From contig NC_135760.1 in assembly GCF_052425735.1 (NCBI RefSeq), positions 5,890,001 to 5,954,000 on the forward strand: DNA of 64,000 bases, read 5' to 3'. This document shows positions 38,571-41,500 of this stretch, piece by piece; within the stretch, counting starts at the first letter, position 1; each line of letters begins with the position of its first letter. Position numbers and translations under genes: made by a program. Under the pieces are notes generated by a model. That model saw nothing but the letters and a program-made list of their open reading frames with translations. It did not search any database and had not been told where the DNA came from. Origin of the DNA: Oculina patagonica (taxonomy: Eukaryota).

Positions 38571-41500
38571 ATGAAATTCGCGCTGGTTCTGGGGCTTTGC
38601 CTGGCGTTCGCCTTCGTGGTTGAATCGTTTGAAGAAGAGGCAGTTTTGGAAGGCGAACAAGGAAAGCAATCATTTGAAGACGAGGCAGTTTTGGCAGACG
38701 AGCGAGGAAAGGAATCGTTTGAAGACGAGGCAGTTAACGTTTTCACGGACGAGCAAGGAAAGCAATCGTTTGAAGACGAGGCAGTTTTAGGAGGCGAACA
38801 AGGAAAGCAATCGTTTGAAGACGAGGCAGTTTTGGAAGGCGAACGAGGAAATAAATCATTTGAAGACGAAGCAGTTTTGGCAGACGAGCAAGGAAAGCAA
38901 TCGTTTGAAGAAGAGGCAGTTTTAGCAGACGAGCGAGGAAAAGAATCGTTTGAAGACGGGGCAGTTTTAGAAGGCGAACAAGGGAATGACAAACGTCGTT
39001 TTGGCCCAAAGGTAAGTGTTTTCTCTTTGAAAAGTATTAACTGAACTATAAAAAAACAAGGAGCTGTCTATTCTGTTTTGTTAACTCAAGCTTTTCGAAG
39101 CTTCATATATGAACTAACTACCGCGTCACCCACAGTCATGCTAAAGACTTAAAACCAAATACAGCCAAACATTTAAATGTAAAAAAAGCAGGTTTATTGA
39201 CGATCTTTACAAAAAGTGGATATATATTATTTTAAGTTAACGTCCCTGCCTGGTTTGGAAACTAATTTATCGATTTCAATTCCGCCAATTGTCGGAAGAT
39301 ATCTCGATCCCGAATGTTTCTCAAAAGGAACACCATTAACAAGTCCCTTAATATCTGATTTTCAGTGTACGACCGATGCCAACTGTAAACACAGCGGAGA
39401 ATGCTGTTTCATGACTCCCGGCGACCTTCTCGGTGTATGCAGGCCTTGCCGTCGAAAGTCTGTAAGTAATTCTAAAAGATATCAACAGTTTTTATTTCGG
39501 GTTTGGGCCGTAATTCTAGAGAGTAGTGACCATCTGAAGGATTGGACAGTTTAAGCACCTCGATCTTCTTTTTCCTACAAATAGCAATCACCCCACGACG
39601 ACGACGAGCTAGGAAAGGAATCGTTTGAAGACGAGGCAGTTTTGGAAGACGAACAAGGAAATGACAAACGTCGTCTTAGACAAAAGGTAAGTGTTTTCTC
39701 TTTGAAAAATACCAACTTAACCATTAAAAGACAATAAGCTGTCCATACCGTTTCGTTAACTCGAGCTTTTCGAAGTTTTATATGAGCTAACTACCACGAC
39801 TTCCACAGTCATGCTACAAGACTTGAAACCACATACAGTGAAACATTTAAATGTAAAAAAAGCATGTTTATTGACTACCTTTACTAAAAGTGGATATATG
39901 TTACTTAAAGTTAATGTCTGCCTGGTTTATATATGACCATATATAATCAGCCCATTAAACCACCGATAAGCTACAGTAATTTATAGATTTCCGCCAAATG
40001 TCGGAAGATATCTCCCGAATGTTTCTTGAAAGGAATCCCATTAACTCGTTCCTTAATATCTTATTTTCAGTGTAGGACCCATGCCGACTGCGATCGCCTA
40101 GAATGCTGCGGGCGTTTCGGCCGATGCGTGCTTAAAATAGGACCGTTTTGCCGTCCAAAATTTGTGAGTAATTTTGAACGATATCAATAGTTTTAATTAC
40201 GGGTTTGGGTATTTCTCTAGAGTTGTGACCATCCGAAGGTCCGACAGTTTTAGTACCTCAATCTTTTATTTCCGCAAGAAGCAACCACCCAACGGGTATG
40301 AAAATTTTGGCAACCTGTAGCTTGTGAGCACTCAGTGGCAAAGTCCACTGCAAACCATCAAGATATCACAATTAAGTAATGCAACAACTTAAAAAATAAT
40401 AATCGGTTTTTTTGAAGACGTGCGAAAACAACTTTTGAGGATTAGCCTCAATCTTTCAAATTGCAATTTATTTCCATCCAAGCCATCCGCAGCCAGGAAC
40501 GCTTAATTGTTAACAGTTTCAGTGGTCTAATATAGCAGTGTTAATAAAAATGGACCATTATTTGTAGGTTTCCTACGACGAAAATATAAATTTAAAATCC
40601 GTGAAAAAGCCCCTTTAACCCACCGATAAGGTAATTTACAAATTTTTGCCAAATGTCCGAAGATACACGGTGGAAGATCTCTCAAATGTTACTAAAAAAG
40701 ATCCCATTAACAAGTCCCTTAATACCTGATTTTTAGTGCAAGACCGATGCCGACTGTGATCCGCGCCTAGAATGCTGCGGACGTTTAGTCGGCCGATGCA
40801 TGCCTAAACCTGGACCCTTTTGCCGTCCAAAGCCGTCTGTAAGTAATTCTAAAAGATATCAACAGTTTTAATTACGGGTTTGGGTATTTCTAGAGAGTAG
40901 TGACCATCGGAAGGATCCAACAGTTTTAGTACCTCGATCTTTTATTTCCTGCAACCACCTGACGGGTATGAAAATTATGGTATCCTGTAGCTTGTGGCCA
41001 TTCTGGCAACGCGGACTGCAAAAACCATCAAGATATTACAATTCAGTAATATGCAACAACTTTAAAAATAATTTTCGAATGTTTGAGGACGCGCGGAAAC
41101 AACTTGTGAGGATTAGCTTCAATTTTTCAAAGTAACTGTAATCCATTATTTCCATCCAAAACATCCGCAGCCAAAAACGCTCATTAATAGATTCAGTGCT
41201 GTAATGTAGCAGCTGTTAATAAAAATTAGACATTTTGTATAGGTTTCCTACGACGAAAACACGGCAAATTTTGGCTACACAAAAATCTGTTAAAATCCGT
41301 GACAAAGCCCTTTTAACCCACCGATAAGCTAATTTATAAACTTTCGCTAAATGTCCGAAGATACACCGTTGAAGATAACCCGAATATTTCTCAAAAGGAC
41401 CCTACTAACAAGTCCCTTATTATCTGTCTTTCAGTGTAAGACCGATGCTGACTGTGCTCGAGGAGAATGCTGTCACAGAGTCGGGCTTTACAGTCGATGC

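Follow-up and report, generated by a model that had tools for sequence, protein, structure and literature searches.

In the assembly studied here, the hypothetical gene LOC144646285 of the stony coral Oculina patagonica, which had been annotated previously, is a fusion of parts of two paralogues: the intron behind its first cysteine module runs, at 39597-39603, directly into the tail of another first exon. The gene lies in a stretch of 64,000 nucleotides (nt) from RefSeq assembly GCF_052425735.1 (contig NC_135760.1, positions 5,890,001 to 5,954,000 of the forward strand). This whole stretch was analysed and is called the window; positions are counted from its first letter, and negative positions lie upstream of it. 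The fused gene belongs to a ~100-kb cluster of tandem paralogues, on the + strand in the window, that encode small secreted cysteine-rich (colipase/knottin-like) peptides. All 46 matches of the region's DNA in the 529-Mb genome fall inside ~100 kb of one contig, which is of chromosome scale. The reading favoured here, with a probability of roughly 0.6, is that a deletion fused two neighbours of the cluster into one gene with two propeptide-plus-KRR units, in which the downstream product would stand under the promoter and signal peptide of the upstream gene and cleavage at KRR is predicted. From the gene structure, such capture of a promoter and signal peptide appears the most economical reading.

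The paralogues share a common layout, comprising exon 1, then one to three module exons with six cysteines each (6-Cys), and a final exon with four (4-Cys). Exon 1 encodes a signal peptide (MKFAL...VVES), acidic repeats of 15 residues (SFEDEAVLEGEQGK) and a conserved ...GNDKRR followed by four residues. DKR(R) ends all eight exon-1 copies in the cluster, including the most diverged (EMDKRHLFKK, GNGKRSLIQW), and the stretch from KRR to the first Cys reads FGPK, LRQK, LGQR or WFKR. The module exons measure 90-120 nt, are in phase 0/0 and follow the spacing C-x5-C-x4/5-CC-x5-13-C-x7-9-C, while the last exon adds the four further Cys and a Pro/Thr tail.

Junction and gene models

Homology to the exon-1 tail, intron 1 and first module of the family occurs twice in succession in the fused gene, with a sharp switch at 39597-39603. 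By self-BLAST, positions 38300-39600 match a paralogue designated gene 2 at 6269-7587 (83%), and positions 39603-40722 match the same gene at 6897-7969 (84%). A three-way alignment places the break inside CACCCC-ACGACGACGACG-AGCTAGG. To the left of the break the sequence tracks the conserved intron head seen behind other modules; to the right stand the last 84 nt of an exon 1, with 80 of the 84 positions as in gene 2, comprising ~1.3 acidic repeats, KRR, four residues (LRQK) and the GTAAGT donor. The self-BLAST and the alignment thus bear out the statement of the preliminary description that intron sequence switches at about 39595-39603 into the exon-1 tail of a paralogue. Its further statement, that a near copy of the three modules and the last exon of gene 2 follows downstream, also holds, as the modules at 40071, 40737 and 41435 differ from those of gene 2 at 7 of 93, 2 of 102 and 4 of 108 nt, respectively, and the last exon is likewise a near copy. 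Every other exon-1 tail in 134 kb of the cluster is preceded by a start codon and a signal peptide.

The two sides joined at the break, intron 2 at ~+135 and exon 1 at ~-84, are mutually non-homologous and have only ACG in common. The junction itself reads (ACG)4, with one ACG from the intron side, one from the exon-1 side and two extra copies. Judged from these letters, the junction fits a non-homologous, microhomology-type joining with slippage or templated insertion. Unequal homologous crossover was rejected because the sides of the break share no homology beyond ACG. The earlier proposal that either a deletion or an unequal crossover fused two genes is therefore retained as to the fusion and dropped as to the crossover; the deletion is favoured on the module types described below.

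A protein search with a paralogue exon 1 returned three O. patagonica proteins. LOC144646285 is represented by P0011 (XP_078361944.1 in RefSeq, KAL9980362.1 in GenBank; 349 amino acids, aa) and by isoform X2, P0010 (XP_078361945.1; 315 aa). Both read ...CRPCRRKS-QSPHDDDELGKESFEDEAVLEDEQGNDKRRLRQK-CRTHADC..., where QSPHDDDELGKESFEDEAVLEDEQGNDKRRLRQK is the translation of the internal exon. Splicing all exons of Table 1 reproduces P0011 exactly, and the same set minus module 2 reproduces P0010; the introns are GT..AG throughout. The 102-nt phase-0 exon that had been predicted from the letters is present at exactly those positions in all three records, and the module before it ends in RRKS (CRRKS) as described, while the end of exon 1 had to be moved from 39002 to 39011. 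Module 2 is skipped in isoform X2 and every module exon is in phase 0-0, so that the number of modules per product may vary by exon skipping.

Table 1 Features of the fused gene LOC144646285 (positions in the window).
Feature	Position	Strand	Remarks
Fused gene, exon 1 (from upstream parent, g3a)	38571..39011	+	Signal peptide, 7.9 copies of the 45-nt acidic repeat (SFEDEAVLEGEQGK), GNDKRRFGPK
Intron 1, GT..AG, 354 nt	39012..39365	+	Identity of 84% to the other intron-1 copy (39687-40070)
Module 1a, 6-Cys exon (CTTDANCKHSGECCFMTPGDLLGVCRPCRRKS)	39366..39461	+	Unique in the genome; terminal-type minus the C5-C6 loop (21-nt deletion)
New short intron, 123 nt	39462..39584	+	Start of what was intron 2 in the upstream gene; a latent pyrimidine tract and AG (tcttctttttcctacaaatag) close it
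Breakpoint, (ACG)4	39597..39608	+	From alignment and inspection; joined sequences non-homologous
Internal propeptide exon, 102 nt, phase 0-0	39585..39686	+	Part of both P0010 and P0011
Intron 1 of the downstream parent (g3b)	39687..40070	+	From alignment and splice reconstruction
Module 1b (CRTHADCDRLECCGRFGRCVLKIGPFCRPKF)	40071..40163	+	92.5% identical to gene 2 module at 7362
Module 2	40737..40838	+	Left out of RefSeq isoform X2; RNA-like contig joins 40838 to 41435
Module 3, terminal-type 6-Cys	41435..41542	+	Contig of run X1 exact at 4/4 sites that distinguish it from gene 2
Last coding exon, 4 Cys (TCLLRCQDYLECRFFRC), Pro/Thr tail, stop	42339..42446	+	Joint 41542>42339 in run X1

In the proposed history, an old non-homologous, microhomology-mediated deletion would have joined two neighbouring paralogues. 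Retained from the upstream gene would be the promoter, exon 1, intron 1, module 1a (of the terminal type) and ~135 nt at the start of the intron after it. From the downstream gene, a sister of gene 2, the promoter, the signal peptide and most of exon 1 would be gone, and the last ~84 nt of that exon, with KRR and the donor, would remain together with all that follows. A pre-existing pyrimidine tract and AG 15 nt before the break, together with the retained donor, would have given rise to the 102-nt phase-0 exon. The outcome would be a single gene with two propeptide-plus-KRR units, the downstream product of which is presumably now driven by the promoter and signal peptide of the upstream gene. 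If a proprotein convertase then cut at the KRR kept inside the precursor, the multi-module chain would regain its native N-terminus (LRQK-C...), and module 1a would either come free as an additional 6-Cys peptide or be lost along with the longer propeptide.

Splicing and predicted cleavage of the internal exon

The internal exon is made up of 15 nt of former intron, ~1.3 acidic repeats, KRR, LRQK and the native GTAAGT donor of the downstream parent's exon 1. Of the AG sites that lie in frame ahead of the donor at 39686, that of 39585 alone combines an open frame with a preceding pyrimidine tract, and an in-frame TAG stands directly upstream of it. The tract has 13 pyrimidines in the 16 positions from -20 to -5, which at least equals the true module acceptors; a similar tract and AG occupy the homologous place behind the modules at 7362 and 40071. 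An open in-frame exon would be expected by chance after such a break in ~1 of 4 cases, and the frame alone is thus no evidence of selection. The exon is present in the gene models of both the submitter (GenBank) and NCBI (RefSeq).

The transcript check consisted of mapping contigs of one RNA-like run, X1, to the region. Two joints, 40838>41435 and 41542>42339, were recovered, both GT..AG. Together with the module 3 contig, which is exact at four diagnostic sites, they indicate that the downstream exons are transcribed and chained. The possibility that the module exons are mutually exclusive was rejected, as the modules are chained in both gene models and RNA-like contigs run from module 2 through module 3 into the last exon. 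A third joint, 39684>40070, was considered as support for the donor of the internal exon and rejected. It is probably the splice between exon 1 and module 1 of gene 2 itself, because it carries the gene 2 base at 39685, has a short module side of 21 letters, and ends before the next site that distinguishes gene 2 from the fused gene. The 21-letter side explains the full depth of its bin (777 x 21/147 = 111), and the depth over 39476-39622 is explained by contigs that begin near 39600. With regard to the RNA junctions to which the preliminary description had pointed, the downstream 3' splices were therefore found in X1, the joint 39461>39585 was not, and the joint at the donor probably belongs to gene 2.

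Several observations weigh against use of the exon. The gene models may be partly ab initio. In X1, module 1a has zero depth, no contig covers the fusion-specific exon start (39585-39599), and no contig or read with the joint 39461>39585 was found. Searches of the protein collections returned only the genome's own models and no transcript-derived protein that spans the junction. Omission of exon 39585-39686 also leaves the frame open. Use of the exon in mRNA is partly evidenced, by two concordant gene models and good splice signals.

These observations bear on an alternative in which the fusion is real and most or all transcripts leave out the 102-nt exon, by a splice 39461>40071. The product would be a 315-aa four-module chain without an internal propeptide, and the annotated exon would reflect a choice of the gene prediction. 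Skipping introduces no stop, the module exons are all in phase 0-0 with at least one of them skipped in isoform X2, the acceptor at 39585 has three purines at -6 to -4, and X1 yields neither the start of the exon nor its upstream joint. We nevertheless consider this alternative rather unlikely. The same exon emerges from two annotation pipelines, its pyrimidine tract is as good as those of true module acceptors or better, its donor is a native exon-1 donor, and the joint 39461>40071 is missing from X1 as well, because that run has no module 1a at all.

If the internal exon is included, as the favoured reading holds, the precursor gains a second predicted cleavage site. The exon keeps DKR(R), with KRR at 39666-39674, and the RRK after module 1a is one P-to-R change away from the RPK/HPK consensus of the other modules. 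The other inter-module links are short (RPKF, RPKPS or HPKS) and have no dibasic site. Cleavage at KRR/RRK into separate peptides is plausible on these motifs. The acidic segments have net charges of -27 and -6 and the modules of +2 to +5, a pattern consistent with the pairing of an anionic propiece with cationic mature parts.

The fate of module 1a is a separate question. It keeps its frame and all six Cys and has neither a 4-Cys partner exon nor the C5-C6 loop. Given the loss of the loop, it may be a relic inside a longer propeptide rather than a second product. An AlphaFold 2 model built with an alignment of 11 paralogue sequences (mean predicted local distance difference test score, pLDDT, 84) shows a small hairpin-containing unit. 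Its best matches include knottin/inhibitor cystine knot toxins, MIT1 and Dkk1, with template modelling (TM) scores of 0.5-0.6 and non-significant E values of 2.5-4. It seems unlikely to us that the gene encodes a new two-product precursor, in which cuts at RRK and KRR would free a loop-shortened 6-Cys mini-knottin, half of a colipase fold, plus a multi-module colipase-like chain. The allele may be polymorphic under this proposal, since relatives and one RNA data set seem to be without the upstream unit. Module 1a offers a natural test of whether the 6-Cys half of a colipase fold can survive alone.

Origin of the fusion and its genomic support

The order of the parts alone would be produced equally by a deletion between neighbouring paralogues and by a tandem duplication of ~0.7 kb. 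A deletion between two different paralogues is favoured because module 1a belongs to the terminal type and was not copied from module 1b. At the nucleotide level it shares 57% identity with module 1b and with module 1 of gene 2, although the flanking introns are 80-84% identical. In contrast, its identity to the terminal-type modules at 14721, 41435, -22354 and 47680 is ~80%, with one 21-nt gap as the only major difference. This gap removes the C5-C6 loop, which no other module lacks. For the intron head that follows module 1a, identity is 87-88% to those behind 40737 and 14022, as compared with 81.5% to the one behind module 1b. The downstream half closely follows gene 2, with identities of 95% in the exon-1 tail, 92.5% in the module, 92.5% in the intron head and 88% over 1.5 kb. 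The halves thus trace to different parent types, module 1a to the terminal type and module 1b to the first-module type, the downstream half being a sister of gene 2.

An internal tandem duplication within one gene would have copied the exon-1 tail, intron 1, the first module and the head of intron 2, and would yield exactly the observed order of parts. Intron 1 speaks for it and against the deletion: the two copies are 84.1% identical to each other, as compared with 80.5-83.5% to gene 2, and the intron-1 tree pairs them, weakly (ultrafast bootstrap 70), as a tandem duplication also predicts. Moreover, no remnant of an unfused pair was seen in this genome. However, the module of the first copy would then have diverged very fast from module 1b while the flanking introns stayed 80-84% identical, and it aligns with the terminal type across a single gap. 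The intron head behind it is nearer to those of other modules than to that of module 1b, and in three of four segments the second copy shares 92-95% identity with gene 2. A tandem duplication is accordingly judged improbable. Immediately upstream of gene 2 lies a gene with a single module (exon 1 at -690, module at 1286); that the upstream parent of the favoured deletion was copied from this gene was considered and rejected, because its exon 1 is gene 2-like and the six best matches of module 1a do not include module 1286.

Genomic support for the junction comes from the contigs of the probable source run, in which 98% of the sampled 31-mers of 39300-40200 are present; ~17% of the 31-mers in this interval are specific to the junction region. 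X14, an independent O. patagonica-like DNA sample, contains mismatch-free contigs at 38882-39203, 39174-39487 and 39623-40080, module 1a and its flanks included. On the other side of the balance, X14 has no listed contig over 39488-39622, its word share of 0.68 corresponds to the two flanking contigs alone, and its depth of 11.3 in the junction bin is about half that of the neighbouring single-copy contigs (~20). In X10 and X20 (DNA-like, organisms B and D, 2-3% diverged) the downstream half is covered, and 38594-39599 is unseen at an identity of at least 95% beyond a 24-letter flank. A search of JGI metagenome contigs with a 32-mer of the junction gave no match.

These gaps, together with the expression of the downstream exons without module 1a in X1, are what would be seen if the junction were an error of assembly, or if the colony that was sequenced carried it as a structural variant, private or heterozygous, rather than as the normal state of the locus, but this is very improbable: assemblers join overlapping homologous sequence, whereas here non-homologous sides meet at a clean (ACG)4, the X14 contigs end exactly where 31-mers are shared with paralogues, so that graph breaks are expected there, and a polymorphic variant would remain a real allele.

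Related precursors and the surrounding cluster

Module 3 and the last exon together form a 10-Cys unit, in which six and four Cys follow the spacing C-x5-C-x4-CC-...-C-...-C in P0011 and in the equivalent part of P0008, a paralogue model; the extra modules hold the first six Cys only. By this cysteine pattern the family is treated here as putatively colipase-like. P0011 matched no Pfam family at threshold, Prokineticin, Colipase and Dickkopf included. The 71-aa terminal unit reached E=0.29 and 12 bits against Dickkopf_N, below the 25-bit cut-off. Its structural model is poor (pLDDT 63), with Dkk1 as the top fold match at a non-significant E of 1.4. A sequence search of the PDB gave a scorpion knottin at E=0.21 only, the look-up of the terminal unit in the ESM Atlas gave no usable match, and the search with module 1a against 1.84 billion representative proteins was uninformative, as it returned translated repeat junk only. 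A literature search found no usable genome or expression paper on O. patagonica.

The AVIT/prokineticin/MIT1 proteins and the C-terminal domain of Dickkopf share with the Oculina family the 6-Cys spacing C-x5-C-x4/5-CC-x5-13-C-x7-9-C followed by four Cys. The fold matches of both models include MIT1 (1imt) and Dkk1 (3s2k, 3s8v), with non-significant E values of 1.4 to 4. Activation of prokineticin receptors requires the AVITGA N-terminus. In contrast to these proteins, the Oculina family has no Pfam match at threshold and no AVITGA N-terminus, as the four stretches between KRR and the first Cys given above attest.

A closer counterpart in layout is provided by the colipase-fold nematocyst toxins of anthozoans, whose precursors are modular, contain dibasic sites and have their 6-Cys and 4-Cys halves on separate exons (PMC11896702). 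They include U-GRTX-Esi14-18 of Eunicella singularis, with orthologues reported in Octocorallia and Hexacorallia (PMC11896702). The likeness is one of layout as described in that paper. Both sets are secreted, have 10 Cys distributed over 6-Cys and 4-Cys exons, are without AVITG, and comprise several domains with dibasic sites. In both, paralogues have been remodelled by exon loss, and some products, released or predicted to be released, carry a partial Cys scaffold. The exon layout of the fused gene and its KRR at 39666-39674 agree with the modular-precursor description. Unlike these toxins, the Oculina precursors have a long propeptide of acidic 15-residue repeats, extra 6-Cys half-domains without a 4-Cys partner of their own, and, in the fused gene, a predicted internal cleavage spacer that would derive from a gene fusion recycling a fragment of exon 1.

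A further comparison is with secreted cysteine-rich repeat proteins (SCREPs) and other multi-peptide venom precursors (PMC6262176, PMC9885460); the cysteine pattern and multi-domain layout of the Oculina family are compatible with the SCREP concept (PMC6262176). Like the Oculina precursor, they have a signal peptide and tandem disulfide-rich domains, sometimes with basic-site spacers that free several peptides. Most SCREPs acquired their repeats by internal domain duplication, whereas the Oculina spacer would come from the fusion of two genes and stands at one inter-module boundary only. The locus also resembles chimeric genes that arise by deletion between tandem paralogues, a general mechanism, in that an upstream 5' part is combined with a downstream 3' part across a microhomology break with the frame kept. 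It departs from typical chimeras of this kind in that the breakpoint runs from intron to exon; as a consequence, a first-exon fragment would have become an internal cassette exon through a pre-existing latent acceptor.

The locus thus offers a base-level, dated-by-sequence example of how a multi-peptide precursor may originate in cnidarian toxin-like gene clusters. One non-homologous deletion and a latent intronic acceptor would have made a piece of a first exon into an internal, putatively cleavable spacer exon, and the same event would have given the downstream gene the promoter and signal peptide of its neighbour. The broader impact is modest, since modular colipase-fold precursors with dibasic sites are known in anthozoans (PMC11896702) and the gene had been annotated as hypothetical. 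What is new is a modest variation on such precursors, a spacer exon from gene fusion.

The cluster around the fused gene plainly carries mosaic histories. The intron heads behind the modules (the first ~135 nt; for example 39462-39596, 40164-40296, 40839-40970, 7455-7589 and 14124-14258) reach 98.5% identity between paralogous modules, as compared with 80-88% in intron 1. Either gene conversion or constraint on a splicing element may account for such conservation. At 17992-18111 lies an orphan, a short exon 1 (MKFALFWRLCLAFAFVVESFEETEVLGDEQGNGKRSLIQW) whose GTAAGT donor is intact; no module exon was found between it and the exon 1 of the next gene at 21106. It looks like another truncated paralogue, possibly the trace of a second deletion event.

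In that next gene, LOC144646287 (21106-28128), intron 1 contains ~3.6 kb (21709-25333) that its paralogues do not have, and the RefSeq and GenBank annotations of the gene are in conflict. The RefSeq model (P0008) has a truncated first module with only two Cys (CKSHADCDRWIFSPQ). In the GenBank model (P0009), exon 1 continues into an unrelated open reading frame (ORF), the position of which was not located and which may lie in the insertion. Relative to the downstream half of the fused gene, gene 2 has ~6 kb of extra sequence between modules 1 and 2 (7969-14003), presumably a transposon insertion.

Upstream of the window (-44311 to -22256, loci L013-L019) are further family members, with modules at -43185, -35868, -28614 and -22354; the exon 1 of one of them encodes a very short acidic propeptide ending in EMDKRHLFKK. 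An ORF on the minus strand at -8334..-8218 resembles a 4-Cys last exon. Within the fused gene, the intron stretches 40505-40651, 41240-41386 and 41534-42121 have contig depths from thousands to more than 100,000 in all four runs and are high-copy repeats. A near-perfect palindrome (ggtcgccatgttggagcccaag/cttgggctccaacatggcg-like) at 41890-41945 suggests an element resembling a miniature inverted-repeat transposable element. Further downstream, positions 54032-54191 are a run of 160 N, either a gap or masked sequence.

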